Virus record (IMG/VR): IMGVR_UViG_3300047157_000197
Coordinates: 211,971 to 275,970 of that record
Length of the DNA stretch: 64,000 nucleotides
Direction: 5' to 3' (one strand)
In this document: one piece after another, positions 33,766 to 61,610 of the stretch
How the letters are laid out: the number at the start of each line of letters is the position of its first letter
Position numbering within the stretch: position 1 is the stretch's first letter
Notes under the pieces: generated by a model
The model's input: only the letters and a program-made list of their open reading frames with translations
What the model was told of the DNA's origin: nothing
Databases searched by the model: none
Translations under genes and position numbers: made by a program

Positions 33766-34767
33766 ATGGAAAATGCAATAATCTTTACAGGGTGTTCTTA
33801 TACATTCGGAGAAGGGCTTGAATTGTATTCAGATACACCAAAGTGGATAAATCAAAGAAACTACCAAACCCATGATTTTGAATTAAAACAAATTCATGAT
33901 TCGGACGGTACTAACTTTAGGTTAAATAATAATTTTCCATCTATTGTTAGTAAACATTTTAATACCATACCAATACAATCAAATAAAAATGGTGGTAGTT
34001 TCGCATCAAGTCTACGATTTATACGAAAAAACCAAGCCACTATTAAAAAAGAAAAGACTAAAAAAATAGTAAGTATTATATTTCAGTTAAGTTCTTTTAG
34101 TAGAGAACCTTTTCATTTTGATTATTCTTGTGAATGTGATTTATGTGAAGGAACTCTTTGGGCATATTGGGGTGAGTTTTATATGCATTTAGAATATCTT
34201 AGTGATTTAATTTCAAAAAAAACTAATACAGAACAAATAATCAGATTTCAAACATCAATAGATGATAAAAATAGAAATGTAATTATTAAATATTTTTCGG
34301 GTATAATGAAACTAATTTATAATGATTTTGATTATGATTATTTTGTTCAAAAATCATTAGAAAATAAAGAATATTTTTCAACTATAATGGAAACTGTAAT
34401 GGAAAATATTGATGATATTAAAAATAAACAAAACAAAGATGTATTAACTTCACTTCAAGCAACAATAGAAAAATTTGAAAGGGAAATTGCACCTGTATAT
34501 TTTATAGATAGTTGGTGTGAGGATACTTCTAAATTAATTTTTAATAATGAGTTTTATTATAATAAATTAATACGCTTAAAGGGAGATGATGGTAAGTATT
34601 ATAAAAAATGGACAGAATGGGAAAAAACTATAAAGAATAGATTAGTAAAGGATGATTTTCCAAATACACATAATCATCATCCATCGCTACATTCACATCA
34701 ACGTATAGGAGAATCTATAATAGATTTTTTAAATAAAAAACCGTTTTTGGAAATAAAGTATATTTAA
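33766..34767 (+). CDS. SGNH-hydrolase-like protein
   Basis: FTGCSYTFG; C-terminal HHPS. Confidence 0.6.
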   Translation: MENAIIFTGCSYTFGEGLELYSDTPKWINQRNYQTHDFELKQIHDSDGTNFRLNNNFPSIVSKHFNTIPIQSNKNGGSFASSLRFIRKNQATIKKEKTKKIVSIIFQLSSFSREPFHFDYSCECDLCEGTLWAYWGEFYMHLEYLSDLISKKTNTEQIIRFQTSIDDKNRNVIIKYFSGIMKLIYNDFDYDYFVQKSLENKEYFSTIMETVMENIDDIKNKQNKDVLTSLQATIEKFEREIAPVYFIDSWCEDTSKLIFNNEFYYNKLIRLKGDDGKYYKKWTEWEKTIKNRLVKDDFPNTHNHHPSLHSHQRIGESIIDFLNKKPFLEIKYI

Positions 34768-34801
34768 TCAGGTATGCAAAACTTATATTAGATTATATTA
34801 T

Positions 34802-34963
34802 ATGATAAACTTATCTGAAGAAATACAAAGAATTTTAACAGTTCTTGAAGATGCAAGAGATGAAAAAGATTGGGAAATGGTAAATGATACTATTGCTGAT
34901 TTAGAAAAGGTCTACGAAGAACTTGATAGACAAGAAAATGGATTTACTTATGAATATGAATAA
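34802..34963 (+). CDS. small acidic helical protein
   Basis: 53-aa ORF read by eye. Confidence 0.5.
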   Translation: MINLSEEIQRILTVLEDARDEKDWEMVNDTIADLEKVYEELDRQENGFTYEYE

Positions 34964-35028
34964 AGTAAGAAAAATAATTTGGGAATATTGGATTAAACCA
35001 TGGGGTGTATCCATTTAAATAATAAGTT

Positions 35029-35415
35029 ATGATTATACCAATAGATGTAAAACCACCTAAGAGAGTACAAAAGCTTTGGGGATATGAATTGTGGATTCAC
35101 AATGATGAAGAATATTGTGGAAAATTATTAGTTTTCGTAAAAAAGATGGCAAACTTTTCAATGCATTATCATCTTAAGAAAAAAGAAACTTGGTATATTC
35201 AACAAGGAAGTTTTCAATTCAATTGGATAGATGTTGAAAATGGATTACACGATAGTAGGATTCTAAATGAAGGGGATTCTGTTTTGATAGAAAGAGGTCA
35301 ACCACATCAATTGGTATCGTTAGAAGAGAACTCAATCGTTTTTGAGGTATCTACTGAACACTTTGATGAGGATTCATATAGAATATACAGAGGAACACCA
35401 AATGATTTATTATAA
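35029..35415 (+). CDS. cupin-domain protein (sugar isomerase-like)
   Basis: KLWGYE, SMHYH..KKET, PH, EVST. Confidence 0.8.
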   Translation: MIIPIDVKPPKRVQKLWGYELWIHNDEEYCGKLLVFVKKMANFSMHYHLKKKETWYIQQGSFQFNWIDVENGLHDSRILNEGDSVLIERGQPHQLVSLEENSIVFEVSTEHFDEDSYRIYRGTPNDLL

Positions 35416-35583
35416 TGTATAACGAAAAACACCCAATTAAAATTACCAAAGAATTTTCTGAAAAGTACAATTCCCCAGCAATGAAGTTAAATCTTCTTGA
35501 ACAAGGTTGGAAGTATAAAGGAACAAATAAAGGTAATCCCATCTTTGAATATTATCATTCATAAAATTTTAACATAATTTTAA

Positions 35584-35636
35584 CACTTTTTATTAGGAAT
35601 TGTGGTTTATTTTCACTATATTTACTATGTAAATAA
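35584..35636 (+). promoter_or_regulatory. repeated promoter cassette (copy of 20155-20207)
   Basis: 14 + 32 nt identical blocks. Confidence 0.8.
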
Positions 35637-35643
35637 GTGATAT

Positions 35644-35868: not shown

Positions 35869-35886
35869 AAAATAAATCAAAAAAAA

Positions 35887-35933
35887 CTTGTGTATGTCAA
35901 ATATATTTCGTATATTTACAAAGTAAATGAGTG
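35887..35933 (+). promoter_or_regulatory. promoter cassette shared with 38073-38119
   Basis: tttcgtatatttacaaagtaaatgagtg (28 nt identical). Confidence 0.8.
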
Positions 35934-35952
35934 ATAATTAAACCTTAAAACT

Positions 35953-38050: not shown

Positions 38051-38072
38051 ATGAAAAATAAGTACGAAAAAA

Positions 38073-42633: not shown

Positions 42634-44262
<1,629 letters not shown>

Positions 44263-44384
44263 TATGGCTAAAACTAAACAAGAAGAGTGGTTACATGAAT
44301 TGGTGAAGAAATACTCCATTCCAACCAATGATAACACAGATAAGAGGGGTATATTAAACGAAACACAATTAAAGAATTTAAAAA

Positions 44385-44690
44385 ATGGGAAGAACTAAAA
44401 ACTTTCTTGATAGTCTAAACTTAAATGAAGAAGAACTAAATGAAGAGTTATATTCAAGAGCAGATTCAGAGTATCAATACAAAAAATGGTTAGAATCAGA
44501 AGAATTTGTAGAATATGTAAATGCAGAACTTGATTCAACAAGACCTAGGTATTCAGAATATGATATTATGCGTGCAACTAGATATGCATCTGAACATATT
44601 ACAATAGAACCAAGTGAAGTTGGTAAGGAAGTATATGATATGTTATTTTCTGAGAAGATAGAAGAATATCTAACTTGTAAAACTTTTTAA
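44385..44690 (+). CDS. hypothetical protein
   Basis: ORF track. Confidence 0.6.
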   Translation: MGRTKNFLDSLNLNEEELNEELYSRADSEYQYKKWLESEEFVEYVNAELDSTRPRYSEYDIMRATRYASEHITIEPSEVGKEVYDMLFSEKIEEYLTCKTF

Positions 44691-45187
44691 TGAATTACTA
44701 TAAAGAACACATAGATAAGATTTCAAACTTTCCTATCGAGGGAATAACTTACAGAGATATTCAACCATTACTTGCAAATCATACAGTATTTATGGATGCA
44801 ATCAAAGATATGGGAAATCTCATAGAAACTAAACCTGATTATTGGATAGCATTGGAATCACGAGGATTCTTATTTGCATCTGCACTTTCAATGTTATTTG
44901 GTGGTGGAGTTAGATTAATTAGAAAAAAAGGGAAGTTAGGAAATAGTAGATTGATGAGAGTTGATTATGGATTAGAATATGGTAAAGATTCATTTGAAAT
45001 GGCTTATCTACCTCAATTCGATTTGGGTAAAGTTGTAATCGTAGATGATGTATATGCAACTGGTGGTACTATGAAAGCTGCTGAAGGTTTAGTTAAAGGA
45101 CATGGATTAGAAGTTATCGATAAACTATGTTTAATGGATATTGGTATTGTAAAAGACCACGATGTTAAATGTTTAGTAACTTATTAA
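44690..45187 (+). CDS. apt: adenine phosphoribosyltransferase
   Basis: ESRGF, RKKGKL, LEYG, VDDVYATGGT. Confidence 0.9.
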   Translation: MNYYKEHIDKISNFPIEGITYRDIQPLLANHTVFMDAIKDMGNLIETKPDYWIALESRGFLFASALSMLFGGGVRLIRKKGKLGNSRLMRVDYGLEYGKDSFEMAYLPQFDLGKVVIVDDVYATGGTMKAAEGLVKGHGLEVIDKLCLMDIGIVKDHDVKCLVTY

Positions 45188-45188
45188 T

Positions 45189-45452
45189 ATGAAACGTTGG
45201 AAAGAGTACACACAAAAACAAGAAAAAGAAGTATTTAGTAACTTATACAAATATGGTGTACTATATCTAGGAACTACATTAATGATGATTTCACCATTCA
45301 TTATTGATTCTATTTATGGAAAATTGGGAATGATTGTAGGTTTAATTCTCATCACAATTCAGACACAGAAAACAAAACAATATAATCTTTCCTTACTTAA
45401 TGCGGTGGGGATAGTTGGTTACTTATACGCATTATTAAAAAATATATTATGA
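45189..45452 (+). CDS. small multi-TM protein
   Basis: Three hydrophobic segments. Confidence 0.55.
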   Translation: MKRWKEYTQKQEKEVFSNLYKYGVLYLGTTLMMISPFIIDSIYGKLGMIVGLILITIQTQKTKQYNLSLLNAVGIVGYLYALLKNIL

Positions 45453-45640
45453 AACAAATTGTATTATTTCTAATAATTATGGTATTGATGGGATTTACTA
45501 TTAGTACTACTCAAAAAGAAAACTCATGGGAAGTAAAATATCATGAAGTAAAAAAAGAAAGAGATTATTACAAAAAAACATCTGAACAACTTTTAAAAAA
45601 TTGGAAAGATTGTGAAGAAAAATTAGTAGAGGTTATTTAA
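45449..45640 (+). CDS. TM + coiled-coil small protein
   Basis: ORF track. Confidence 0.5.
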   Translation: MKQIVLFLIIMVLMGFTISTTQKENSWEVKYHEVKKERDYYKKTSEQLLKNWKDCEEKLVEVI

Positions 45641-46188
45641 TGAGTAAAACAATATTAGTATCTGCAACACCATTAGAACATGGTGGATTAACTGAGTTAA
45701 ATGGATTACCTATATTCCAAGTGGGAATTGGTAAAATCAATTCTGCTATGAATTTAACAGAACTAATTTTACAAGAGAAGCCAGATTTGGTTATAAACTT
45801 TGGTAGTTGTGGAAATCTTAAAAATCACAAAGTTAGTGAGGTTATTGAAGTTGGAACTGTTTATAATAATATAGATGTTAGACCTTTTGCACCATATGGT
45901 TGTACACCAGGAAATATTCCTTGTGGATTAAAATTATCAGATAGTGAAATTCGTTGTTTTACAACAGACCAAATATATGATAACTCTCGTTCAGATTATG
46001 CAGAGAAGTATTTAGAAATGATTAATGAATGTGATATCGTAGATATGGAATGTTATTCACTTGCATATGTTTGCAACCAATATGGGATAAATTTTAAATC
46101 TTACAAATGGGTAAGTGATGATGGAAATATTGATTCATGGGAAGAAAACGCAGCAATAGGATTTGAGAACTTTAAAAAAATAATATAA
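45640..46188 (+). CDS. MTA/SAH nucleosidase-like protein (PNP_UDP_1)
   Basis: GIGKINSA, INFGSCG, VDME, KWVSD. Confidence 0.8.
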   Translation: MSKTILVSATPLEHGGLTELNGLPIFQVGIGKINSAMNLTELILQEKPDLVINFGSCGNLKNHKVSEVIEVGTVYNNIDVRPFAPYGCTPGNIPCGLKLSDSEIRCFTTDQIYDNSRSDYAEKYLEMINECDIVDMECYSLAYVCNQYGINFKSYKWVSDDGNIDSWEENAAIGFENFKKII

Positions 46189-46913
46189 TGAATATAGCAG
46201 TTTTAGTAGATATAATAAAAGAAACAAAAACAAACTGGAGATTTATATTTGAATCTCCTCTTTACGATAATATAAACTTCATACCAGGTCAATTAGTACA
46301 ATTGGTTGCTAAACCATACGCTCCAAGTGAGGGTGGAAATGCAATACAAAGAAATTATTCAGTTGCAAGTTATCCTGATAATACAAATAGATTTGAATTA
46401 ATTATTACTTACTTGGAGGGTGGGCAAATGAGTGAATATTTATTTAAAGATGTTAAAATAGGAGATGAGTTTGGATACAAAGGACCAATGGGAGTATTTA
46501 CACTACCAGATAATCTAATAGATAGAGATATTTATTTTGTATCTACTGGTTCGGGTATCTCACCATTTCGTTCAATGATAAATTATCTTCATCAGAATAA
46601 AATTCCATTTAAAAATATAAAATTATTCTTTGGTACACGAAAAGAATCTGATTTATTGTATAGAAAAGAATTAGAAACGATACAAGAAGAATTACCAAAT
46701 TTTGAATTCATTCCATGTTTATCAAGAGAAGATAAACCAGAATTTGCTCATGGATATGTACATGAACACTATCTTGATTTGATTGATAGTACAGATGAAA
46801 AACCTTGGGTTTATTTCTGTGGTTGGGATAGAATGATTTCAGAAGGTAGAAAACACCTCGATGAGAGAGGTTTTGAAATGTTTAAAGATATAAGAGTAGA
46901 AATATTTGGATAA
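46188..46913 (+). CDS. ferredoxin-NAD(P) reductase-like flavoprotein
   Basis: RNYS, GQMS, GPMG, TGSGISPF, YFCG. Confidence 0.88.
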   Translation: MNIAVLVDIIKETKTNWRFIFESPLYDNINFIPGQLVQLVAKPYAPSEGGNAIQRNYSVASYPDNTNRFELIITYLEGGQMSEYLFKDVKIGDEFGYKGPMGVFTLPDNLIDRDIYFVSTGSGISPFRSMINYLHQNKIPFKNIKLFFGTRKESDLLYRKELETIQEELPNFEFIPCLSREDKPEFAHGYVHEHYLDLIDSTDEKPWVYFCGWDRMISEGRKHLDERGFEMFKDIRVEIFG

Positions 46914-47040
46914 TGAAAAAAACAACTCAAACAGAATTATTTGATTTACTTTATACTTTAGAGGATAAATTCGAATACGATGAAACCAAGGCGGGATTAA
47001 GAATAGGTTTATTGATAAATGACTTACAAAACGAACTATT

Positions 47041-48402: not shown

Positions 48403-48408
48403 AATAAT

Positions 48409-48573
48409 ATGGTAGAATTTTTTAGACACATATTTGGAATCTGTGGTGAACATTTTCATCCGAACATTTGGAACACGATGGCATCTTTGCCAATCATAGC
48501 AACAACTGTACATTATATCAAATGTAAATGTGGTGGTTGGTTCAGACATAAAAAAGATTGTGAAAATAAATAA
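48409..48573 (+). CDS. small His/Cys-containing protein
   Basis: 54-aa ORF read by eye: HIFGICGEHFHP...CKC. Confidence 0.5.
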   Translation: MVEFFRHIFGICGEHFHPNIWNTMASLPIIATTVHYIKCKCGGWFRHKKDCENK

Positions 48574-50341: not shown

Positions 50342-50677
50342 ATGAGTTTAGATAGAAAATATAAAGTTAAACATATTTACATAGGAGAGGATGATGTCCA
50401 AGAGTGGACACAAGGTGTTGGAAAATATACTTTAATGCCTTTAATGTTTAGAGGAATTAAAAAAATAATAGAACTTAACTTAAAAAAATATCATTTTGCA
50501 AGAGTTGAATGTGTTATTAGAACAGAAAAAAAGGCATTCGATTTTTATGTAAAAGAAGATGGTATTTGGGATTCTCTTGAAAAAGTAATGGAGTGGGCAA
50601 TTGATGAAGAAGAATACGAAATGTGTTCTGAAATTAAAAAATTAGAAGAACTTTTAGATAAAGATAATACGTTTTGA
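50342..50677 (+). CDS. hypothetical protein with UVR-like C-terminal hairpin
   Basis: WAIDEEEYEMCSEIK; start 50342. Confidence 0.55.
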   Translation: MSLDRKYKVKHIYIGEDDVQEWTQGVGKYTLMPLMFRGIKKIIELNLKKYHFARVECVIRTEKKAFDFYVKEDGIWDSLEKVMEWAIDEEEYEMCSEIKKLEELLDKDNTF

Positions 50678-51417
50678 AAATATTAGTTATAGGAGATAGT
50701 TGTACAGATGTTTTTGTATATGGTAGTTGTGATAGGTTATGTCCTGAAGCACCAATACCTGTATTCAAACCATCAAAAACCATAACCAACCAAGGTATGG
50801 CTGGAAACGTTGTTGATAACCTCAGAGCATTAGGAGTTAGAAAAACTGAACTAATCACTAACAACGAACAAATCATAAAAACAAGATATGTAGAAACTAA
50901 ATCAAACCAAATGCTACTTAGAGTAGATGGTAATGATAAAGTTTCTAATTCATTTGATTATCGTAAGGTAGATTTTGATTCATATGATGCAGTAATTGTA
51001 TCTGATTATGATAAAGGATATCTAACGTATAAAGATATTGGTGAAATTGGTAAAAAATCTAAACTATCTTTTATTGATACTAAAAAAACAATAGGTAGTG
51101 GAGATTACTTCAAAGATTATACATTTGTAAAAATGAATGAAGAAGAATGGGATAATTGTGTTTCAAAAGGTGCAATTTATTCAGATTGGAAGAATAATTT
51201 AATTGTAACTATGTCTGAAAGAGGATGTATGTATGATGAGAAAAGATATCCGGTTGATAATACAATTGAAGTAAGAGATTTGAGTGGTGCAGGTGATACT
51301 TGGATGGCATCATTTGTAATGAAATATGTAGAAACTTCAAATATTGATACATCAATAATATTTGCAAATGATAATGCAACAATAGTAGTACAAAAAAGAG
51401 GTGTAACAACAATATGA
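50674..51417 (+). CDS. PfkB sugar kinase, HldE/RfaE kinase-domain-like
   Basis: RLCPEAPIPV, GMAGNV, SDYDKG, DLSGAGDT. Confidence 0.85.
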   Translation: MKILVIGDSCTDVFVYGSCDRLCPEAPIPVFKPSKTITNQGMAGNVVDNLRALGVRKTELITNNEQIIKTRYVETKSNQMLLRVDGNDKVSNSFDYRKVDFDSYDAVIVSDYDKGYLTYKDIGEIGKKSKLSFIDTKKTIGSGDYFKDYTFVKMNEEEWDNCVSKGAIYSDWKNNLIVTMSERGCMYDEKRYPVDNTIEVRDLSGAGDTWMASFVMKYVETSNIDTSIIFANDNATIVVQKRGVTTI

Positions 51418-52217
51418 TAAAAGAAATAATTTGTATAGGAACTTCTTTTACAGAAGGGTCTGGATTAAATCCAAAAGGTAAAAAAGATGTAAACCAAGCT
51501 GTAAAATGGTATAAAGAAAATAAAAATATTACAATAAAATCACTGTCAGAATACTCCTGGCCAAATGTTCTATCTGAACTATTAGATATAAAAGTAAGAA
51601 ATTTAGGTAAATGTGGTTCAAGTATAGAATATCTTATGAGAACTCTTGAAGAAATACTTGAAACCGAAGATTACTCAAATAAATTATTTATCTTAGAATA
51701 CTCTAGTTGGGGTAGAAGTGAATTATGGTCATCAGAATATAATCAATGGATAGTTGCAAATTGGGGACATAAAAATGGAGATGAACCATCAGATGGATAT
51801 GCTACTATGCTTTCTACTGATTATAATTTCGGAGAACAATTACCTCATTCAGAAATAAATTTTTATGATGAATTTTTAAATAAATTTTTTAATGAAAAAG
51901 AATTTTTAAAACAAAGAGATAGACATTTCTTAAACTTATTATATAAACTTAAATCTAAAAATATTAAATATCAAGTACTTCTATTAGAGAATTGTTTCTT
52001 AAATGAACTAGAATCTAATCCATTGTTTAACAATAAAGATTTAGATTTTAAAATAGATAATAAGCATTGTGATTTATGGGGATTTGTAGAAAAGAAGGGT
52101 TGGACACTAACTGCAGAAACAAACGGAAAAATAAAGGATGACCACCCATCAATTTCAGGACATCGATTTCTAGCTGAAGAACTTGCAAGAAAATTAAAAG
52201 TAGTTAATAACATATAA
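51414..52217 (+). CDS. SGNH-hydrolase-like protein
   Basis: GTSFTEG, SWP, NLGKCG, DDHPS. Confidence 0.65.
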   Translation: MIKEIICIGTSFTEGSGLNPKGKKDVNQAVKWYKENKNITIKSLSEYSWPNVLSELLDIKVRNLGKCGSSIEYLMRTLEEILETEDYSNKLFILEYSSWGRSELWSSEYNQWIVANWGHKNGDEPSDGYATMLSTDYNFGEQLPHSEINFYDEFLNKFFNEKEFLKQRDRHFLNLLYKLKSKNIKYQVLLLENCFLNELESNPLFNNKDLDFKIDNKHCDLWGFVEKKGWTLTAETNGKIKDDHPSISGHRFLAEELARKLKVVNNI

Positions 52218-52219
52218 AG

Positions 52220-52615
52220 ATGAGAAAATACTTACCAACATTAGGAGAATTGATTGATAGATTATCAATCGTTCAGTTAAAAGAAGTGAAGATTCCACAA
52301 CATAAAGAGGAATATGCACAAGAAATATTAGAAATAGTACACGATATTAACGAAATCCTTAATGATAAACCAAAAGTAGATGGAGAATTTATCAGAGCAA
52401 TAGTTGTACTATCTCAGATGAATACACATATTTGGTACAATGAGGATAATGCAAGGAGTGGTGATGATGTAGGAAATAAATTAATGTTAACACATGGTTT
52501 AAATGGAATCAGAAATACTGCCAAAAATAAAATACAAGAATTAGATGGTGGTAGAAAAGATTACAAGATAGATTGTATTGCTGATGAATTTAATGATTGG
52601 GATGTATCGTGGTAA
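52220..52615 (+). CDS. helical hypothetical protein (DUF4254/DUF6165-like)
   Basis: GELIDRLSI..LK, IW..ED, N..R...K. Confidence 0.5.
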   Translation: MRKYLPTLGELIDRLSIVQLKEVKIPQHKEEYAQEILEIVHDINEILNDKPKVDGEFIRAIVVLSQMNTHIWYNEDNARSGDDVGNKLMLTHGLNGIRNTAKNKIQELDGGRKDYKIDCIADEFNDWDVSW

Positions 52616-53220
52616 AAAATAAACTTTGGAGATTTGGAGATTCATATTCTTTAACTTCAAAAGATTTTAATCATATTGAACAAAATCATTCGACTTATAT
52701 AGCTGAACATTTTAATTTAGAATTAGTTCATCTTGGTCAAGGTGGGTTATCTAATTTAGAAATATTTAACAAAATTTTATCTAATAGTCAAAAATACAAA
52801 AAAGGTGATATGTTACTAATTAATTTTGCATCACGAAGTAGATTTGCAATTGTAGAAAACGATGAAATTATAAAAATAAATGGAGGAGAAACTGATATGA
52901 ATAATCAAACGATTAGAAATGGTGTTTTGAGTAATTTAGTAATTCCTATATCGGATATAATTTTCTATTTAATTAAACCCTTTTTAGAATTATTAATTAA
53001 AAAAGGAATTAGAGTTTATCATTTTTATAACGATGTTGACAGAGAAGATGGACTTGTTTCAACAAAAATTAAAAATGAATTAATTTTTGATGTAAACGTA
53101 GGGTTCATTCAATGGATAAGTGATAATGGGTATGAAGATTTATCACCAAATGGAAATATACATTATTTAGTTGGTAAACAAAAAGAAATTGCAGAAGAAA
53201 TAATCAACAAAATTAGTTAA
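52609..53220 (+). CDS. SGNH-hydrolase-like protein
   Basis: FGDSYS, LGQGGLSN, GNIHY; GTG start. Confidence 0.6.
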   Translation: MVKNKLWRFGDSYSLTSKDFNHIEQNHSTYIAEHFNLELVHLGQGGLSNLEIFNKILSNSQKYKKGDMLLINFASRSRFAIVENDEIIKINGGETDMNNQTIRNGVLSNLVIPISDIIFYLIKPFLELLIKKGIRVYHFYNDVDREDGLVSTKIKNELIFDVNVGFIQWISDNGYEDLSPNGNIHYLVGKQKEIAEEIINKIS

Positions 53221-54066
53221 ATGGAAATAACAAACAAATTACATATATTTGGCTGTTCACATTCAACAGGTATACACAGAGAAGATAATAACAAACCATT
53301 TTGGGCAGACTACATTGCTCAAAATTTAGGATTGGAAAGATTCCCAAGAATTGGACACTCAGGTAAAAATGTTGAGTATATTTTATTTGATATATTTGAT
53401 AGAATATTAAATAATGATATTTCAAAATCAGATATTGTTATTTTAAACACATCTTACCCACTTAGATTTGGTACCCCAAGATTACAAAACTATAATAAAA
53501 ATCCTATGGATTATGATTTTGATTATGAAAAAATTTTAGGAATAAAAGACTATGAATCTTTTGATGAGTTAGATACAAGCTTGACATTTAATCTTTGGTA
53601 TCATCAAACTTTTGGAGCTTGGAAACTTTTAAATTCTATATGTGATAATGTTTATCAATGGTGTGTAATTGATGTAAATGAGATTGATAAAACCTTTCAG
53701 GATCTACAATACAAGTTACATAATTCAGAAATTCCAAAACGTAGTAATAAACTTTCTTTTTTAGAAGATGCTTCTTTATATCTAAATAATTCTGGTGAAT
53801 CTAATACCAGCTGGAAGAGAGGTGATTCATTAAGAAAATATCGTATGTCTCGTATGTCAAGAACAATAACAGCTCCTAAAGATGCACCGCTAAATCCTTG
53901 GAATAATTTAGTAAAATGTCCAAATAATTATAAGGATTGGGATAGTTATATTGAGTTAAATCAACATCCAAAGGGACATCTAAATAATACTGATAAACTT
54001 CATAAAGACTTTGCAAAACAATTTATAAACACAATAAACCAAAATGAAAATAAAAGATTATTATAA
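53221..54066 (+). CDS. SGNH-hydrolase-like protein
   Basis: FGCSHS, GHSGKN, GHLN. Confidence 0.55.
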   Translation: MEITNKLHIFGCSHSTGIHREDNNKPFWADYIAQNLGLERFPRIGHSGKNVEYILFDIFDRILNNDISKSDIVILNTSYPLRFGTPRLQNYNKNPMDYDFDYEKILGIKDYESFDELDTSLTFNLWYHQTFGAWKLLNSICDNVYQWCVIDVNEIDKTFQDLQYKLHNSEIPKRSNKLSFLEDASLYLNNSGESNTSWKRGDSLRKYRMSRMSRTITAPKDAPLNPWNNLVKCPNNYKDWDSYIELNQHPKGHLNNTDKLHKDFAKQFINTINQNENKRLL

Positions 54067-54337
54067 GATGTATCTATCGTTACATCAAAACAAGAATTGT
54101 ATCAGATTACATTTCTTAGGACAATGGGTAACTTTGATAAGTGCCTTTTTGATATTTTATCATTGGTTATGGTATCTAATACCAATTATACCATTTATTA
54201 TATATCCATTTGCATGGAGTGGTCATTATCTATTTGAAAAGAATGAACCCGCTGCATTCAAAGACCCATGGAAAGCAAAACTTTCCGATTGGATAATGTT
54301 TTTAGATATATTACGAGGAAAAGTAAAAATATTTTAA
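54044..54337 (+). CDS. DUF962 (Mpo1-like) membrane protein
   Basis: YLSLH, LHFLG, AWSGHYLFEKNEPA. Confidence 0.8.
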   Translation: MKIKDYYKMYLSLHQNKNCIRLHFLGQWVTLISAFLIFYHWLWYLIPIIPFIIYPFAWSGHYLFEKNEPAAFKDPWKAKLSDWIMFLDILRGKVKIF

Positions 54338-55278
54338 TGAGTGGCAACAAAACTTTAGTTGTAATAGGATGTAGTTTAACATTTGGTCAAGATGTTAAAT
54401 ACGAAGAAACTTGGGGTTATTTATTAGCAAAAGAACTTGGGTTGGATTACTTAAATCTTGGTTGTGGTGGAACTGGTTGGTATTATGTTGAGGAAGTAGT
54501 AAAAACATTTGTTTTAGAAAACCAAGAAAATATAGATGATTACTTATTCGTTATCCAAAAATCAGAATTCAATAGAAGACCAAATTATGAAGAAATTTCA
54601 TTTATACCAACAGAAAATAAAAATCTAAAGAAATATAATATAAATTTAATACCTAGGATTGCCTATGAATTTATAGGTCCAAAAGAAGGTGTTAGAAGTT
54701 GTGAACCTATTCATCACTTCAATAAAGATAGTTGGATTCATGATTTTAATATACCAAACCACAGAGTAAACCCTAATCATAGAAATGCATGGTGGGTTGA
54801 TGTAAATAAGGATGGTAAGAAATCTCCACATCCAAAAACAGATAGTATGGTTGAATCTTTACTTACGCATTGGGGATATTCTATATTTGGATTACATAAG
54901 TTTTTGAAAGAATTTAATGTAAATCATATACTTGTAGATGGTTATTTTCCAATCTTATCGTGTAAAATGAATTTTAAAAAATACGATTGTTTTAGTGAAG
55001 ATGAGTTTGAACTAACACAAGATTTTTGGAGTTCTAATCCAATGAAAAATGATGAAGATGAAATACTTCTCGTGAAGCATGATAATCCAAAATTAATAAG
55101 TATAATCGATAAAATAGATATTAAAAATAAAATAGATGATGTTGTTCTTTGGAGTACATTCTTTTGGAAGGGACATAATACTGAATATAATATTGATGGA
55201 GGACACCCTGGTCCAAAAGGACATATTAATATAAAAAATGTTATACTAGAAAATATCAAACAAAAAGGATTGGCATGA
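54337..55278 (+). CDS. SGNH-hydrolase-like protein
   Basis: GCSLTFG, NLGCGG, DGGHPG; start 54337. Confidence 0.7.
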   Translation: MSGNKTLVVIGCSLTFGQDVKYEETWGYLLAKELGLDYLNLGCGGTGWYYVEEVVKTFVLENQENIDDYLFVIQKSEFNRRPNYEEISFIPTENKNLKKYNINLIPRIAYEFIGPKEGVRSCEPIHHFNKDSWIHDFNIPNHRVNPNHRNAWWVDVNKDGKKSPHPKTDSMVESLLTHWGYSIFGLHKFLKEFNVNHILVDGYFPILSCKMNFKKYDCFSEDEFELTQDFWSSNPMKNDEDEILLVKHDNPKLISIIDKIDIKNKIDDVVLWSTFFWKGHNTEYNIDGGHPGPKGHINIKNVILENIKQKGLA

Positions 55279-56195
55279 AATATATCATAAATACAGGTTG
55301 TAGTTATGGAGTAATGTTTCGTTCCATGAAAGAGTTTACAAAAGGAAACGATACTGATTTTAAAGTAATTGATTTGCATTGTGATTCATTTGGTGCAGAA
55401 TATCAAAAAAGAAGTGTAGTTTATACTGTTTCTAAATTATTATGGGATGGTGTATTACCTGATAATATATTTGTAATAATAGAATGGTCTCAACCAAATA
55501 GATTATTTACAGAAATACCAAATGAATTATGTAAAGATATTTTAAATGATTCGGATAATATTGAAGGTACTTTTATTTTAGATAATAAATTTAATTTAAA
55601 AGAAAAAACTAATCAATTAATTGGAAAATGGAAATCATTAAATGTTATTATTGGTAATAAAGTTTACACAAACCCAGATGTTGATGATTTAACCTATTTT
55701 GAAAATAAAGAAATAGAATGGTATCTAAGTGAATATAAAAATAATTGTCACATATCACATAAACCAATAGATAGATATGAGCATTATTTACAATGTATTG
55801 TAGATACTCAAAGTTTTTTAACCTCATTAAATATAGAACACATTTCATTCTTAATGAATGATACATTTACAGATTTAAAAAGTAAATCAGATTATTTAAA
55901 AAATATTTGGAATTGTGTTGATTTAACTAAATTTGTATTTCATAATAGGTTTGGTGGAATTGATGAGTTTGCAATGGAAAAATTTGGTAACATTTCTTAT
56001 CTAAGTGGAGCAAATGAATGGGATATACCACCAGATGGTAATATGATGGAATTTGGTAATCATCCACATGATTCTGTATATATAGATTTCTTTGAACAAT
56101 ATATTTATATTAAAGGTAAAAAGTATTTTGGAAACCTAACATTTGATTATACGGATAGGTGGTTAAAAACAAAACATAATGCAATTAGGTTATGA
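55275..56195 (+). CDS. SGNH-hydrolase-like protein
   Basis: GCSYG, WSQPNR, GNHP. Confidence 0.55.
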   Translation: MKYIINTGCSYGVMFRSMKEFTKGNDTDFKVIDLHCDSFGAEYQKRSVVYTVSKLLWDGVLPDNIFVIIEWSQPNRLFTEIPNELCKDILNDSDNIEGTFILDNKFNLKEKTNQLIGKWKSLNVIIGNKVYTNPDVDDLTYFENKEIEWYLSEYKNNCHISHKPIDRYEHYLQCIVDTQSFLTSLNIEHISFLMNDTFTDLKSKSDYLKNIWNCVDLTKFVFHNRFGGIDEFAMEKFGNISYLSGANEWDIPPDGNMMEFGNHPHDSVYIDFFEQYIYIKGKKYFGNLTFDYTDRWLKTKHNAIRL

Positions 56196-56971
56196 TAAAT
56201 AAAAAATCAGAGTGGAATCAAACAAAATCCGATTGGGGATTTGGAAGAATAAAACTTGATAATTTTCTTGACGAAAAAACTGTACACCAATTATATGAAG
56301 AATGTAAGAATGCACCAAAAGGTGGATGGACTGTATTTACTCGTGCTGGTTCTCGTATGGAAGAATTTAATGATTTAATTTCATTACCAACTGCACATAG
56401 AGTAACCTATGATATAATGCATAGTGGAGAGTTCTTATATGAATTAGAACAATTGACAGGTATTGTAGGATTATTACCAGACCCTCATTTAGTTGGAGCA
56501 GGATATTCAATAATCCGAAATGGAAAAGATTTAGGTTGTCATTATGATTTCAATTGGAATGATAGAATTCGATTACATAGAAAACTAACATCACTACTAT
56601 ATATTACACCAGATTGGAAAAATGAGTGGGGAGGACATATTCAGTATTATGATGATAATATTGATATAAATCCAAAATCAAATCTTATAGAATCAGTTTC
56701 ACCAAAGTTTAACCGATTGGTAATTAATGAAAATGTAAAACATGCACCATACCATAGAGTAAGTTCGGTAAACGCACCAAATGATATTCCAAGATGTGCA
56801 ATCAGATTTTTCTATTATATTTCTACATCAGAATATGATAAGGATAACCCACCACATAGAAGTACATACAAAACAAACGAATACGAACATCACAAATTAC
56901 ATGAAGAAGAAAATTGGGATGGACACTTTGTAGGAAAAGGTGGTGAAGATTATGGATATAACTCAAAATAA
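56192..56971 (+). CDS. 2OG-Fe(II) oxygenase
   Basis: HYDFN, WGG, YH, R..I. Confidence 0.85.
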   Translation: MINKKSEWNQTKSDWGFGRIKLDNFLDEKTVHQLYEECKNAPKGGWTVFTRAGSRMEEFNDLISLPTAHRVTYDIMHSGEFLYELEQLTGIVGLLPDPHLVGAGYSIIRNGKDLGCHYDFNWNDRIRLHRKLTSLLYITPDWKNEWGGHIQYYDDNIDINPKSNLIESVSPKFNRLVINENVKHAPYHRVSSVNAPNDIPRCAIRFFYYISTSEYDKDNPPHRSTYKTNEYEHHKLHEEENWDGHFVGKGGEDYGYNSK

Positions 56972-57898
56972 ATGAAATATGTACTAACATCAGGTTGTTC
57001 TTTTACTAATAATGTAAGATTAAATCCTAATAATTTAAAAGAAGAAGATTCTAGTAGATTCTCATGGCCTTATTATTTACAAAAAGAATTAGGAAAAGAA
57101 TATGAGGTTTTAAATTATGGTGGTGCAACTAATGATAATGTAAGTTTATGTAGAATCTTTTTTTACCATACAAAAAGATTAATAAAAGAAGGAGTAAATC
57201 CAAAAGATATTATAATAATTGGACAATGGTCAGACCCTAATAGAGAATCTATTTGGATTAAATCTAAGTTCACAGAAGAAGATAGAGAAAAATATGGTCA
57301 CACCTTAGTTTATACACCAACCTGGGAAAAGGAAAATGGTTTCTTTTATTTAACAGGTGGATTTTCTCCACCAGATGGTGAAGATTCTGCACTTAAAAAA
57401 TATGGTATTGAAAACGCAATTAAATATTGGGAAGCAGATATCAATTGGAATAATATTTTAAATCAAGTTTTACATTGGTTAGAATCTTGGTCACATCTTG
57501 AAAGATATTGTAAAGAAACCCAAGTAAATACATATTGGATGAGTATGAGAAACCCTTATTCAGTTGAATCATATGAGTGTTGGTTTGGTGCACCCGAAAA
57601 CGATTCAACCATTCCTACAAAAAATTTATGGTTTGAGAAATATGAAATATTAAAACCATATATTGATGAATTACCAATTAATAAATCAAATCACTGGCAT
57701 TACAAAAACTATAATGGATTATTAGAATGGACAATTGATAATATTCAAGAAGGAGTTCCTTATTTTCAAGAATCAAGTGGAAAATATTTGAGTTGGGAAG
57801 ATTATAAAAAAGAAATCCACGAATATGGTTGGGGTCACCCATCACCACAAATGATGGAAAAGTTTGTAAAAGAAGAACTTATAAACATAATTAGATGA
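56972..57898 (+). CDS. SGNH-hydrolase-like protein
   Basis: GCSFT, SWP, NYGG, WS..R, GHPS. Confidence 0.65.
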   Translation: MKYVLTSGCSFTNNVRLNPNNLKEEDSSRFSWPYYLQKELGKEYEVLNYGGATNDNVSLCRIFFYHTKRLIKEGVNPKDIIIIGQWSDPNRESIWIKSKFTEEDREKYGHTLVYTPTWEKENGFFYLTGGFSPPDGEDSALKKYGIENAIKYWEADINWNNILNQVLHWLESWSHLERYCKETQVNTYWMSMRNPYSVESYECWFGAPENDSTIPTKNLWFEKYEILKPYIDELPINKSNHWHYKNYNGLLEWTIDNIQEGVPYFQESSGKYLSWEDYKKEIHEYGWGHPSPQMMEKFVKEELINIIR

Positions 57899-58533
57899 AA
57901 GAATATAATATAAATGACCCTTGGGATTGGGTAACTACTTTTGAAAATGAAGTTGCAGAATATACTGGTTACAGATATGGTATCGCATGTGATTCTAATT
58001 CTAACGCGATACGATTATGTTTACATTATTTAAACATTACAGATACCGATATAGAAATACCAGCAAATACATATGTATCAGTTCCTAATCAAATTATATT
58101 AAGTGGTAACAGACCACAATTTAGAGATATAAAATGGAAAGGATTATATCCAATTGGAGATACAAGTATCATTGATTCTGCAACTGCATTCTATGAAGGA
58201 ATGGGTAGAGGATATGAAGATAAATTTATGATTTTATCGTTTCATTTAAAAAAGATTTTAAATATTGGACAAGGTGGAATGATACTTACAAATCGAGATG
58301 ATTTTAATGAGTGGGCAAGACCCATGATTTACGATGGGAGACATAAGGATAAATTATATAAAGAAGATGAATTTGAGTGTATCGGTTGGCATATGTATAT
58401 GAGTCCTGAATCTGCTGAAAAAGGATTAAGAATATTTAATTCAGATAAAATACAACAATTTAACGAACCATGTGGCTCATCAGAAATGTATGGAGATTTA
58501 AGAAAACAGAAAATATACCAAGATTATGTCTAA
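57895..58533 (+). CDS. short DegT-family aminotransferase lacking the C-terminal domain
   Basis: FENEVAEY, IDSA, SFHLKKILNIGQGG; only 212 aa. Confidence 0.75.
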   Translation: MKEYNINDPWDWVTTFENEVAEYTGYRYGIACDSNSNAIRLCLHYLNITDTDIEIPANTYVSVPNQIILSGNRPQFRDIKWKGLYPIGDTSIIDSATAFYEGMGRGYEDKFMILSFHLKKILNIGQGGMILTNRDDFNEWARPMIYDGRHKDKLYKEDEFECIGWHMYMSPESAEKGLRIFNSDKIQQFNEPCGSSEMYGDLRKQKIYQDYV

Positions 58534-59581
58534 AAAGAAAATAAATAGAATTTTTTTACTTGGTGATTCTTGGATTGAAGGACAAGGTACCTATTCAGTT
58601 ATACACAAAGACGGCACACTAGATGAACCTTCAATGCCTTTTGATAATACTGGTTTTGGTGGAATTAATGAGTGGAGACGAGAAAATAGTTGGAATAAAT
58701 TTTTTAGAGAAGAGTATGGAGATGATATTGATATTATAAATCTAGGTAGACAAGGAGCAGATAATAAATCAATGTTTAGTAAATTAAACTATATTTTAAG
58801 TTATGATTACCAAGAGACTGATTTAATTTTATTTGGGTTCACTTCAAAATATAGAGATTATAATATAAACCACTGCTTTGGTAAAGAAAACTTAGATAAT
58901 TGGAGAAATGATGATGAAAGAAAAACCCAAGGACAAAAACACAATGAGAATTCTTTTCTATTACATAAATCAAATCCCATTATCAAATGTCCTATTTCCT
59001 ATGAAAGATTACAAATAGCACAACAACTTTTAAAAAAGAATAATGAGAAAAACTTATTTTTAGGAAAAGAGGACTTTTATGAATCAGATGAAATTCCTGA
59101 AGCTGAAAAAGAATTTTCAAGAAAATGGTTACAAGATTTTTTTGTTGAAATATTTGATGAGAGGGTTTATGAAAATATAGCATCAACAAATTATATGTTT
59201 TATCAAAAATATTGTAAATGGAAAGGAATTAATATTTTATTCTTTGATTTGTTTGAACCATATGTAGACTCAAAATTTCCAAATGAATTCTACAACGTAG
59301 ACACAGAAATGTATATCAACTATGGTAAAAAACATTTTAGAGATATTTTAGTAGATTATGAATTTGAAAATTATAGTTTTGATGCACCATATTCGGTATG
59401 GGAATGTGGACATACGTTTCCATCTTTAAACTCAAACCATTGGTATAAAAAAGGAGAAAAGTATTCTGGTCTAATATATCATCCAAATCAACATGGTTAT
59501 AAAGCGTTATTTGATTATTTAGTAGAAAATCATCTTAATAAAGGATATGAAATAAAACCAAAAATAAAAGATATTATATGA
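58526..59581 (+). CDS. SGNH-hydrolase-like protein
   Basis: GDSWIEG, NLGRQGADN, YHPN. Confidence 0.65.
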   Translation: MSKKKINRIFLLGDSWIEGQGTYSVIHKDGTLDEPSMPFDNTGFGGINEWRRENSWNKFFREEYGDDIDIINLGRQGADNKSMFSKLNYILSYDYQETDLILFGFTSKYRDYNINHCFGKENLDNWRNDDERKTQGQKHNENSFLLHKSNPIIKCPISYERLQIAQQLLKKNNEKNLFLGKEDFYESDEIPEAEKEFSRKWLQDFFVEIFDERVYENIASTNYMFYQKYCKWKGINILFFDLFEPYVDSKFPNEFYNVDTEMYINYGKKHFRDILVDYEFENYSFDAPYSVWECGHTFPSLNSNHWYKKGEKYSGLIYHPNQHGYKALFDYLVENHLNKGYEIKPKIKDII

Positions 59582-60300
59582 AAACATTTTATTCAAATGG
59601 TGATTCAGTAGTTTGGGGAGCAGAACTAGAAAATAAACAAACAGAAAGATATTCATCAATTGTGAGTAATTTGTTTAATTGGGTAGATTGTAATAATGCA
59701 TCTGCGGGTGTTTCAAATGATTATATTTTCAGACAGACTATGAGAGATGTTTCACATTGGTTAGATACAAAAAAATGTTGGAGTGAAGAAACTGGTTGGG
59801 TAAAAAGTGATGAACTTTTTGTTTGTATTGGTTGGACATCACCAACAAGATTTGAATGGTGGACAGGAAAAGAATATCAACAAGAAAGATTATGGGCAGG
59901 ATATGATAAGTGGGGAGATAATGATAATAATAGAACCACCGAAGATGATTTCGTTTTAAATCAAACAGAAGATATACCGTCTTACATAAAAACATTGAAT
60001 CAAATAATATCATTGGGTAGTTTTTTACAAGTAAATAATATACCATATTGTTTTTACAATGTATTCTATGATTTTAAAACTTTAAAAGAACCAAAAAAAC
60101 AAATTGATAAGTTTGGTAGAAAAACACACCAAACCTCTTTAAAATCACTATGGAAGCAAATTCCTAATTTTAATGATATATCAATGTACAATTATTTAAA
60201 AACAAATGGGGGAACGTTTTTACCAAGAAAACACCCAACCAAAGAATCTCATATTAAATGGGGGAACTATTTATATAAAAGAATTAGTAATGGCCTGTAA
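59578..60300 (+). CDS. SGNH-hydrolase-like protein
   Basis: GDSVVWG, NASAGVSN, WT..R, KHPT. Confidence 0.65.
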   Translation: MKTFYSNGDSVVWGAELENKQTERYSSIVSNLFNWVDCNNASAGVSNDYIFRQTMRDVSHWLDTKKCWSEETGWVKSDELFVCIGWTSPTRFEWWTGKEYQQERLWAGYDKWGDNDNNRTTEDDFVLNQTEDIPSYIKTLNQIISLGSFLQVNNIPYCFYNVFYDFKTLKEPKKQIDKFGRKTHQTSLKSLWKQIPNFNDISMYNYLKTNGGTFLPRKHPTKESHIKWGNYLYKRISNGL

Positions 60301-60421
60301 GAAAAAACCAAAAACAATTTTAGAAAAACGATTAGAAAAAAACCTTTCCAAAAAGGAATTAGAGGAGTTTTACAAACGAGCTGCTCATAATAATCATTTT
60401 AACGAAATATTCAATAGATAA
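60290..60421 (+). CDS. small hypothetical protein
   Basis: Likely start 60290 within the tracked ORF. Confidence 0.4.
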   Translation: MACKKKPKTILEKRLEKNLSKKELEEFYKRAAHNNHFNEIFNR

Positions 60422-60666
60422 TGACACCTCAAGAGTATTATTACAAATACGTTAGAAAAGATAATAAAACCCTTTACGAAATGCGGATAAAATCCCTCGC
60501 GTGGATGTTAGATTGTTTTGAAAAGGGAACCATACGAAAACGAACAATTGTAACTCTTATACCATTATCAGAATTAATAACCCTCTTAGAGTGGTTAGAA
60601 GAACGAGAAAGATATGAAGAATGTCATACAGTTAAAACAGTAATTGAAAAAATATATGAAAATTAA
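60421..60666 (+). CDS. hypothetical protein with UVR-like C-terminus
   Basis: EERERYEECH. Confidence 0.5.
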   Translation: MTPQEYYYKYVRKDNKTLYEMRIKSLAWMLDCFEKGTIRKRTIVTLIPLSELITLLEWLEERERYEECHTVKTVIEKIYEN

Positions 60667-60880
60667 TAAAAACACGCAACACATGGAATTTTACACAAAC
60701 AACCCAAGAAATCTTCACACTCCTATTAAAAAAGGAAAACTTACGAAAAAACAAAGGAACAAAGAGATAATTTTTAATTTAGAATCTACTATTAATTTTG
60801 AAAAATCCAAAATAGGTGGTGGTAATAAAGAATTGATTGAAAAATTTCAAAACAAATTAAATCAAAAGCTAAAAGGATAG
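60656..60880 (+). CDS. hypothetical protein
   Basis: ORF track; start uncertain. Confidence 0.45.
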   Translation: MKINKNTQHMEFYTNNPRNLHTPIKKGKLTKKQRNKEIIFNLESTINFEKSKIGGGNKELIEKFQNKLNQKLKG

Positions 60881-60884
60881 TAGA

Positions 60885-61610
60885 ATGAAACCTACTAAAT
60901 TAAATTCAATTCTATTTTTAGGAGATTCGTTTACATGGGGACAGGGATTACAATATTATCATCTAATAGAAAACGAAGGTTGGGATTGGAAAAAATGTTC
61001 TAATTTTTTAGAAAGTAGAGAAAGATTTGAAAACCTTGGATATGGAGCAGATGAATATAGAAGAATAAATTCATTCCCTAACCTTGTATGTAAAGAACTC
61101 AATTGTAGACCAATCATTCCTCAACAAGAAAATGGTGGAGATAATTCTAGAATTATAGATATCTTAGAACAAATACATCTATTTGTTACCTCAAATGTAT
61201 TAGATTGTATCATTGTTCAGTTTTCTATACCCTCACGAATAAACGATACGAGATACCAACAATTTAATAATATAGATGAGATAATCATTTCAGAGATAGA
61301 AAGAATAAATGAGTTTTCAAACAAAAATAATATACCATGGTTTGGATTTTCATGGACAAAAGAGGTAGGTAGTATATTAGAGACTCAATATAAAGAAAAT
61401 TACATCCCTATCCAATATGATAATAAAGAATGGAATTATTTTAACATTGAACATCATCCACCAAGTTTTCCATTTAAAAAACTCGTTATAGCAGGAAACA
61501 AGAAAATAAAAGATTTTCATCCTAATTTAGAAGGACACAAAGTTATAAAGAATTCCATTATTAACAAACTAACACGAGTTCGACCCCCTTTTGAACTTAT
61601 AGGGAACTAA
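60885..61610 (+). CDS. SGNH-hydrolase-like protein
   Basis: GDSFTWG, NGGDN, DFHPN..GH; most similar in layout to 33766. Confidence 0.7.
   Translation: MKPTKLNSILFLGDSFTWGQGLQYYHLIENEGWDWKKCSNFLESRERFENLGYGADEYRRINSFPNLVCKELNCRPIIPQQENGGDNSRIIDILEQIHLFVTSNVLDCIIVQFSIPSRINDTRYQQFNNIDEIIISEIERINEFSNKNNIPWFGFSWTKEVGSILETQYKENYIPIQYDNKEWNYFNIEHHPPSFPFKKLVIAGNKKIKDFHPNLEGHKVIKNSIINKLTRVRPPFELIGN

Follow-up and report, generated by a model that had tools for sequence, protein, structure and literature searches.

What kind of proteins does a marine phage encode when it devotes the end of its genome record to a run of small, divergent open reading frames (ORFs) that share a G-x-S motif? The DNA examined here is the final 64 kb (positions 211,971-275,970; hereafter the window, 64,000 nt in length) of IMGVR_UViG_3300047157_000197, a 275,970 bp IMG/VR virus record that CheckV rates as complete. 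An original prediction, made from the sequence alone, had described ten SGNH-like paralogs in this window, nine of them within 10 kb, as an acylation/deacylation toolkit for glycan variation, and had proposed profile and structure models and a copy-number comparison among related phages as checks. We find that the feature is real: all ten ORFs are present on the + strand where they had been placed, and the safest statement is that they belong to a non-canonical, phage-specific branch of the SGNH fold with at least 12 long-lived orthogroups. The fold itself is known, and the family partly overlaps an existing Pfam domain of unknown function (DUF). As to what the proteins do, we hold it somewhat better than an even bet that the whole is best explained as an ancient phage-restricted SGNH branch with Ser-His acyl chemistry, whose copies are separate tailoring enzymes acting on sugar-type substrates.

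Twelve paralogs in one genome

The copies (A to L; Table 1) are ~20% identical to one another; identity to the reference copy is ~17-29% (alignment A1) and many pairs give no BLAST match. For this reason profiles were used to test the family. One built from the ten window copies found two ORFs on which it had not been trained, paralogs K and L, the next ORF scoring only 0.004. When copies were left out of the profile in turn, the left-out copy was the top match among untrained ORFs in 11 of 12 cases, with E-values from 1.6e-21 to 4.9e-5 for ten copies. Paralog H was still the best match among untrained ORFs despite an E-value of 0.0036, and F was the copy not recovered. Direct BLAST matches link F with G (5e-6), H with J (1.2e-6) and J with A (1.6e-5). 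The profiles thus uphold the predicted relationship: the ten window ORFs are true paralogs, and their shared motifs go far beyond chance.

The predicted count of ten holds for the window, nine of these copies lying within 51414-61610 (10.2 kb), but not as a total, since the profile raises the number in the genome to 12. Together these genes occupy ~10.5 kb of 274 kb, or ~4% of the genome. A stop-to-stop six-frame scan found no further fragments of the family.

An SGNH fold with altered active-site motifs

Because paralog F was not recovered by leave-one-out, it was tested by structure. AlphaFold2 models were made of the best-supported copy (B, 66 homologues) and of the worst-supported one (F, 54 homologues), and the other eight window copies are tied to B and F by profile. 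For the B model (predicted local distance difference test, pLDDT, 94), all 50 of the 50 Foldseek matches listed were SGNH proteins, and VIA-align superimposed it on Escherichia coli TesA with a Z-score of 13.8 over 165 of 182 residues at a root-mean-square deviation of 3.0 Å (model 1-267, chain 0-180). Scores nearly as high as for TesA were obtained with acetyl-xylan and other carbohydrate esterases. For the F model (pLDDT 90), the 12 best matches in the Protein Data Bank (PDB) were all SGNH/GDSL proteins with Z-scores of 7.6-10.1, after which the next match fell to 6.0 and to unrelated flavodoxin-like folds. A profile of alignment A1 against PDB sequences likewise placed GDSL/SGNH esterases first (E 9e-4), aligned over blocks I-II. 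By their matches to solved SGNH enzymes, B and F thus have the three-layer alpha/beta/alpha fold with a five-stranded parallel sheet that characterizes the superfamily. In both models strand 3 leads into the same insertion, a beta-meander and then a helical hairpin.

The active-site blocks were then read from alignment A1 and from the orthogroups. In block I, a G-x-S at residues 8-16, the Gly and Ser are invariant in 12/12 copies and the middle residue is D, C or T. Block II reads N/L-x-G-x-x-G in most copies, A and F having other residues at the aligned Gly column. Block V supplies a C-terminal His that is at least 90% conserved and present in 11/12 copies, usually as H-P; paralog C has a Ser at the aligned position and a His five residues further on. 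These are the motifs of the original prediction. Absent from its list was an invariant Arg: block III has no conserved Asn, and after strand 3 there is instead an S/T-x-x-x-R loop. Within the B group the conservation is 67/67 for Ser (S11), His (H244) and the block II Gly (G68) and 62/67 for the Arg; within the F group it is 53/53 for Ser (S10) and 55/55 for both His (H263) and Arg (R76). With Ser10 and His157 as the catalytic residues of TesA, S11 and H244 of B lie equally far from the aligned ends and would therefore fall at the catalytic positions.

The Asp of the canonical DxxH had been described as often missing, and it is: an Asp at His-3 is found in paralog E only, the B group has D/E at His-2 in 60/67 sequences, and no acid precedes the His in the F group. 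The absence of a signal peptide can be read directly from the sequences, because the Ser of G-x-S stands at residue 10-16 in 11/12 copies and leaves no room for one; the twelfth copy has a non-hydrophobic extension of ~60 residues. The label SGNH-like therefore survives for the fold, the Ser and the His, but the proteins are not canonical SGNH enzymes, the block III Asn being replaced by the invariant-Arg loop.

A phage-only branch overlapping DUF6071

At the Pfam gathering thresholds of 27 bits for PF19547 (DUF6071) and 23.6 bits for PF00657 (Lipase_GDSL), paralog I alone passes, as DUF6071. Scores for G (13.5), K (19.3) and L (19.3) fall below the DUF6071 cut-off, as do those of B (19.2 bits) and H (14 bits) for Lipase_GDSL, and the remaining copies have no match to the respective family; NCBIfam gave no match for B. 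DUF6071 is not among the 16 SGNH families of a 2022 review (PMC9487903). Our literature search found no paper mentioning DUF6071, no assignment of a function or fold to it and nothing on phage SGNH arrays.

Homologues are found among viruses. The ESM-Atlas clusters nearest to B by shape (TM-score 0.79-0.85 over the full length, including the insert) are 100% viral, some with DUF6071; those nearest to G by language-model features are 99-100% viral and carry DUF6071. BFVD holds dozens of similar proteins labelled 'uncultured Caudovirales'. Patterns of the F group found no bacterial or archaeal relative in the genomes of 185,579 species. Against 50,697 phage records, neither megablast of the array nor tblastn of B gave a match; only paralog I matched phage records, namely Ralstonia phage RsoM2USA and one marine single-cell virus fragment. 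The family is thus a phage-only branch that overlaps Pfam DUF6071.

Old orthogroups, gained and lost as whole genes

Copy numbers were compared among related phages, as the original prediction had proposed. A 288,673 bp genome with direct terminal repeats (G001) has nine copies, including orthologues of I (67% identity), G (64%), B (46%) and A (33%). Six IMG/VR loci that were scanned have 2-7 copies each over 16-21 kb, four of them 5-7, and orthologues of E, F, G, I and K recur in IMG/VR loci at 33-90% identity. RsoM2USA (MG752970.1), a cultured soil phage of 343.8 kb, has three adjacent copies (locus L040, 125.0-129.0 kb): RsoM2USA_200, _201 and _203, all annotated as hypothetical and each with a family E-value of ~1e-18. 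Paralog F is the most divergent copy by sequence, yet it is the best conserved across phages, with more than 120 homologue clusters at 48% identity or above; E has orthologues of 37-40% in five viral contigs.

Against the close relative L012, the ratio of nonsynonymous to synonymous substitution rates (dN/dS) was 0.20 for F, 0.13 for G and 0.18 for I; B (0.48), D (0.61) and H (0.36) evolve faster, and all values were below 1. A recent burst of copies was considered and rejected on account of the orthologues in related phages and the purifying selection.

Phages with 72-97% identity in their shared genes differ in array content by whole genes. Two extra copies are present in the close relatives L011-L014, where a C-like copy stands between F and the oxygenase gene; a copy 50% identical to C occurs in close relatives at another array position. 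Some related records contain split copies. In contigs from two seawater metatranscriptome libraries, joints were seen at 54337-55276 and 56958-57895. The first omits exactly gene E (938 nt, 54338-55275, with 10 other letters between; flank 33 nt) and the second exactly gene G (936 nt; flank 25 nt). Tentatively, these joints may be natural variants without single paralogs, the flanks being short. These results indicate that the copies are old orthogroups, each represented in related phages, that are under purifying selection and are gained and lost as whole genes.

Table 1. Paralogs A to L and genes adjoining them. Coordinates are window positions unless marked as genome positions.
Feature	Coordinates	Strand	Length	Evidence and remarks
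Paralog A	33766..34767	+	333 aa	outlying copy; leave-one-out E 1.6e-8; G001 orthologue 33% over 336 aa
Paralog B	51414..52217	+	267 aa	G-T-S type; leave-one-out E 3.8e-19
Paralog C	52597..53220	+	207 aa from TTG 52597	G-D-S type; leave-one-out E 1.8e-8
Paralog D	53221..54066	+	281 aa	G-C-S type; leave-one-out E 4.9e-5; orthologues 72% (L012), 47% (L038)
Paralog E	54337..55278	+	313 aa from ATG 54337	G-C-S type with D-G-G-H-P; leave-one-out E 1.8e-12
Paralog F	55275..56195	+	306 aa	G-C-S type; not recovered by leave-one-out
Paralog G	56972..57898	+	308 aa	G-C-S type; leave-one-out E 2.2e-10; orthologues 50-71% in related phages
Paralog H	58526..59581	+	351 aa	G-D-S type; longest insert; leave-one-out E 0.0036; orthologues 39-72%
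Paralog I	59578..60300	+	240 aa	G-D-S type; PF19547 (DUF6071) 36.9 bits; orthologues 60-67%
Paralog J	60885..61610	+	241 aa	G-D-S type; leave-one-out E 3.2e-9; last copy before the record's terminal repeat
Paralog K	genome 5188-6072 (L005:5188-6072), outside window			profile E 1.8e-19
Paralog L	genome 23206-23934 (L006:3206-3934), outside window			profile E 8.9e-16; N-terminal extension ~60 residues
Zeta-toxin/AAA_33-like P-loop kinase	32794..33612	+		PF06414 5.5e-7, PF13671 6e-7; upstream of A
Cupin (sugar-isomerase-like)	35029..35415	+		PF07883 8.8e-7; weak Lyx_isomer, MannoseP_isomer; downstream of A
PfkB-family sugar kinase, closest to HldE domain I	50674..51417	+		PF00294 1.4e-12; TIGR02198 rfaE_dom_I 1.3e-35
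131-aa protein	52220..52615	+	131 aa	only weak Pfam/NCBIfam matches; conserved array member
Mpo1-like (DUF962) dioxygenase-family protein	54044..54337	+	97 aa	PF06127 2.6e-26; 95% identical in L012
2-oxoglutarate (2OG)-Fe(II) oxygenase	56192..56971	+	259 aa	PF13640 6.9e-14; 74-90% identical in relatives
Short DegT/LegC-like protein	57895..58533	+	212 aa	PF01041 5.3e-19; LegC and PseC family matches

Two starts are ambiguous. Paralog C may begin at TTG 52597 or at GTG 52609; for paralog E the longest ORF runs from 54268, yet ATG 54337 abuts the stop of the Mpo1-like gene.

Gene neighbourhood

The neighbours named in the original prediction, a 2OG-Fe(II) oxygenase, a short DegT protein and an HldE-like kinase, were all recovered, the last as a PfkB kinase closest to HldE domain I, and an Mpo1-like dioxygenase joins them. 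HldE domain I is a heptose-7-phosphate kinase; the TIGR02198 match of the phage protein lies below the equivalog cut-off. The stop of this kinase gene overlaps the start of B. In L012, L031, L038 and L039 the 131-aa protein recurs at 70-87% identity and always stands beside a paralog or the PfkB kinase. The oxygenase lies downstream of the F orthologue in all related arrays compared, directly so in L031 and L038 and with one gene between in L012 (the C-like paralog) and L039 (an unassigned 115-aa ORF). The short DegT protein has ~60% of the length of a normal fold-type-I aminotransferase. That it is debris or a pseudogene was rejected, since its relatives keep the length (209-213 aa, 67-92% identity) and its dN/dS is 0.12.

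Paralogs adjoin three unrelated types of kinase. Beside the PfkB kinase at B, the order Zeta-like kinase, A, cupin is common to this phage and G001, and G001-type phages have an APS-kinase-like gene, the B orthologue and an NMNAT-like nucleotidyltransferase in that order. A strict module of kinase, SGNH protein and nucleotidyltransferase is not conserved in the window, where the 131-aa neighbour takes the position held in G001-type phages by the NMNAT-like 132-aa gene but has no homology to it. Relatives add a B12-binding radical-SAM enzyme of ~640 aa, a carbamoyltransferase, a radical-SAM/SPASM protein, a QueC-like protein and an S8 peptidase. In the present genome the B12-binding radical-SAM gene stands at genome 11247-13055, between K and L and just past the joined ends of the record; with K, L and this gene all near the record start, the island spans the record's ends.

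At the other end of the window, 346-4242 holds a nucleotide-sugar set (a fusion of HAD phosphatase and nucleoside triphosphate (NTP) transferase, an rfaE-domain-II-like nucleotidyltransferase, a full-length DegT aminotransferase and a GNAT protein), and a family 2 glycosyltransferase (GT2) lies just upstream of the window. The rfaE-domain-II-like nucleotidyltransferase is 49 kb from the HldE-domain-I-like kinase. Five ORFs at 4239-8084 are without any family. The scan of the array genes showed no AT3 or MBOAT family, and PADLOC gave no hits.

Relation to known SGNH enzymes

The nearest structural reference is TesA (thioesterase I/lysophospholipase L1; PDB 5tif, 1ivn), whose whole chain is matched by the alpha/beta/alpha core of the phage proteins. 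As in TesA, the G-x-S ends strand 1, block II carries a Gly in most copies and the block V His falls just before the C-terminal helix. Unlike in TesA, the block III Asn is absent and the invariant Arg stands two residues further along the loop, the DxxH Asp is either missing or moved to His-2, and ~85 extra residues, the beta-meander and helical hairpin, follow strand 3. TesA is periplasmic, whereas the phage copies have no signal peptide.

Departures from the canonical active site have precedents. In CE2 (carbohydrate esterase family 2) enzymes, which share the SGNH fold, a Ser-His dyad works without a catalytic Asp (PMC9487903), and the CE2 acetyl-xylan esterases Est2A (3u37) and CtCE2 (2wao) were among the best fold matches; CE2 enzymes differ from the phage copies in that they keep the block III Asn, begin with a beta-sandwich domain and are secreted to act as esterases on polysaccharides. 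No block III Asn is found in the SASA and DHHW families either, and in the DHHW O-acetyltransferase PatB1 of Bacillus cereus an Arg guanidinium takes its place in the oxyanion hole (PMC9487903). The PatB1 Arg, however, is in block II and that of the phage family in block III, and PatB1 is extracytoplasmic with a membrane MBOAT partner, of which none is present in the phage array. PatB, OatA and AlgX have the same fold, and the PatB proteins of Neisseria gonorrhoeae and Campylobacter jejuni were among the structure matches, but these enzymes are periplasmic or extracytoplasmic, use AT3 or MBOAT acyl donors and keep the Asn, whereas the proteins of the phage are cytoplasmic, and their array encodes no such donor. 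SGNH esterase domains of phage tailspikes and tail lysins (for example that of 80alpha gp59, 6v8i, a weak profile match) are phage-encoded too; they are domains of large virion proteins acting outside the cell, in contrast to the small, stand-alone, multi-copy proteins described here.

The closest functional analogy for signal-less copies beside kinases, nucleotidyltransferases and a LegC/PseC-like protein is the C-terminal esterase domain of NeuA (E. coli K1, group B Streptococcus). This domain is a cytoplasmic SGNH-type enzyme that de-O-acetylates an intermediate of a nucleotide-sugar pathway, acting on CMP-sialic acid; it is fused, single-copy and has canonical motifs. We saw no sequence match of the phage copies to it.

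Proposed function and its alternatives

From the fold, the conserved residues and the gene neighbourhood we infer catalysis, a role for the Arg and a class of substrate. Each copy would be a small cytoplasmic enzyme with the G-x-S as nucleophile, the block II Gly, the block V His and the Arg-bearing block III loop, and the beta-meander and helical hairpin would probably form a substrate-binding lid. Since Ser and His are conserved, acyl-enzyme chemistry (esterase or O-acyltransferase) is the most likely mechanism: a Ser-His dyad would transfer an acyl group through an acyl-enzyme, in hydrolysis or in O-acyl transfer. The Arg would probably stabilize the oxyanion in place of the Asn, or hold a phosphate or carboxylate of the substrate. 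The repeated pairing with sugar/nucleotide-type kinases and sugar-tailoring enzymes points to sugar-type substrates, probably phosphorylated sugars, nucleotide-sugars or a glycan made from these during infection, and the copies would be separate tailoring enzymes, one orthogroup per step or substrate. Of the predicted toolkit for glycan variation, then, the paralogy, the SGNH fold and a sugar-type tailoring context are borne out, and the function itself is plausible.

Several observations weigh against this explanation. Two of the catalytic features that define SGNH enzymes, the block III Asn and the Asp of DxxH, are missing. The models place B and F in the SGNH fold; the putative closeness of Ser and His and the position of the Arg are read from the alignment ranges of the models. 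Nine of the ten window copies score below every Pfam threshold, and none of the ten matched a PHROGs family. A profile-profile comparison of the F group with the B group was not significant (probability 3%), so that the membership of F rests on its fold, its motifs and one BLAST match. That genes are neighbours in the accessory island of a phage says little about a shared pathway, and some island genes point elsewhere: the Mpo1-like gene here, and the radical-SAM/SPASM, S8 peptidase and QueC-like genes in relatives.

A bolder version of the acyl-tailoring explanation is possible, if doubtful. The family would be a new Ser-His-Arg variant of the SGNH fold, lacking Asn and Asp and bearing a lid, for phosphorylated-sugar or nucleotide-sugar substrates that the neighbouring kinases, exchanged time and again, would make. 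With the 2OG oxygenase, the short DegT protein, the B12 radical-SAM enzyme and the carbamoyltransferase, the dozen orthogroups would then form a phage pathway that builds or re-decorates an unusual glycan or nucleotide-linked metabolite while an abundant marine bacterium is infected. The interest of the family would be higher if this kinase-coupled pathway were true. A demonstrated function would supply a role for Pfam DUF6071 and for the 'hypothetical' proteins, hundreds in number, of jumbo phages that are marine, from soil or derived from other metagenomes. It would add a new active-site variant to the SGNH superfamily and would probably reveal a pathway run by the phage to tailor a sugar or small molecule, with a bearing on how such phages change host surfaces or their own particles. 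The three clustered copies of the cultured RsoM2USA open the family to experiment.

The neighbourhood and the structure matches can also be read in terms of lipids. If the proteins were TesA-like lysophospholipases or thioesterases, hydrolysing lipids or acyl-thioesters, they would remodel host membrane lipids or free fatty acids during infection; E. coli TesA/lysophospholipase L1 heads the structure matches of B, a B homologue is named 'lysophospholipase L1-like esterase' in one record of the Joint Genome Institute (JGI), a gene of the Mpo1-like 2-hydroxy-fatty-acid dioxygenase family sits inside the array and a PAP2 phosphatase is encoded at window 17854-18501. TesA, however, is a minimal SGNH core, so that its top rank tells little about substrate, and acetyl-xylan and other carbohydrate esterases score almost equally. 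The conserved partners that adjoin the paralogs are sugar/nucleotide-type kinases, a cupin and a DegT-like protein, and the array showed no gene for an acyl carrier or for fatty-acid synthesis. We regard a lipid substrate as unlikely.

The kinases and the Arg, which the acyl-tailoring explanation links to sugar-type substrates, would take on a different meaning if the Ser/His/Arg site performed non-acyl, kinase-coupled chemistry on a phospho-, pyrophospho- or sulfo-ester, for instance to hypermodify nucleotides or DNA bases or to make an unusual nucleotide-sugar. There are three independent adjacencies of kinase and paralog with non-homologous kinases, and the invariant Arg occurs where the Asn is missing. 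The B orthologue of locus L010 lies near a sub-threshold DUF1599 ('nucleotide modification associated domain 1'), ThyX and GT2, L039 has its QueC-like gene, and N6/N4 DNA methylases occur near arrays. Nevertheless, a G-x-S plus His is the classical acyl-enzyme set, we know of no SGNH-fold phosphoesterase, and the hints of DNA hypermodification in this genome lie far from the array: one ORF with a sub-threshold likeness to DUF1599 and a second, weak ThyA-like ORF. Such chemistry seems quite unlikely to us.

It is very unlikely that the copies are non-catalytic binders, or cassette-like proteins of counter-defence or host takeover, that are built, like the OSK domain, on a re-used SGNH scaffold. 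Such a role would suit a family that is present in many copies on an accessory island and whose whole genes come and go between phages with 72-97% identical shared genes, as would the possible natural variants without exactly E or G and the faster evolution of B, D and H relative to their neighbours (dN/dS 0.36-0.61). Against it, Ser and His show strict conservation (53-67 sequences per orthogroup), dN/dS is below 1 throughout, the orthogroups are kept across distant phages and PADLOC had no hits. Finally, that the motifs are a chance likeness among unrelated AT-rich ORFs, a view that could draw on the low identities to the reference copy and the many pairs without a significant BLAST match, is practically ruled out, having been refuted already by the leave-one-out profiles and the two untrained matches, and by two independent models (B and F) with the same fold and the same insert; metagenomic homologues that number in the hundreds also speak against it.

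Genome setting and minor observations

The window has a G+C content of ~30%, and nearly all of its genes are on the + strand; no tRNA gene was found in it. The phage genes include GroEL, an SbcC-like nuclease and T4-type tail-fibre modules. No close cultured relative of the phage was found among the 50,697 phage records. The last ~2.1 kb of the record, window 61901-64000 (genome 273871-275970), form an imperfect direct repeat of genome 1-2024, with 1,525 bp at 99.3% and 501 bp at 96.6% identity and with indels. The genome is probably circularly permuted or terminally redundant and was assembled from a mixed population, with a true unit of ~273.9 kb. Since the record's end repeats its start, the array runs on, in circular terms, into the record start. 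IMG/VR classes the record as linear, without end repeats.

At least 14 runs of seawater DNA, which come from many studies and some of which may be the source sample, contain near-identical DNA, and this is therefore a common marine jumbo phage. Pieces of it are present in six metatranscriptome libraries. Short RNA-library contigs of at least 99% identity from three libraries cover much of 54.3-60.3 kb, which is compatible with transcription, though DNA carry-over is possible.

Other features of the genome lie outside the array. Window 42646-46913 encodes the phage GroEL, then a phosphoribosyltransferase, a PNP/UDP-type nucleoside phosphorylase and an FAD/NAD-binding oxidoreductase, a nucleotide-salvage-like block that is kept in relatives; the GroEL is ~55% identical to the nearest chaperonins of the phage collection. 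Next to this block, window 46913-48530 is an insert with an N6/N4 DNA methylase gene (47041-48402) that is absent from the close relatives L011-L014, in which the FAD/NAD oxidoreductase gene is followed almost directly by an 83-aa Biopterin_H-like ORF. The second ThyA-like ORF (genome 186869-187219, 26.8 bits, 233 aa) could be a pyrimidine hydroxymethylase-type enzyme; a canonical thymidylate synthase is encoded at genome 37174-38055. Just upstream of paralog L, L006:727-3021 (genome 20727-23021) encodes a 764-aa protein with a Hint/intein-type domain at residues ~460-660.

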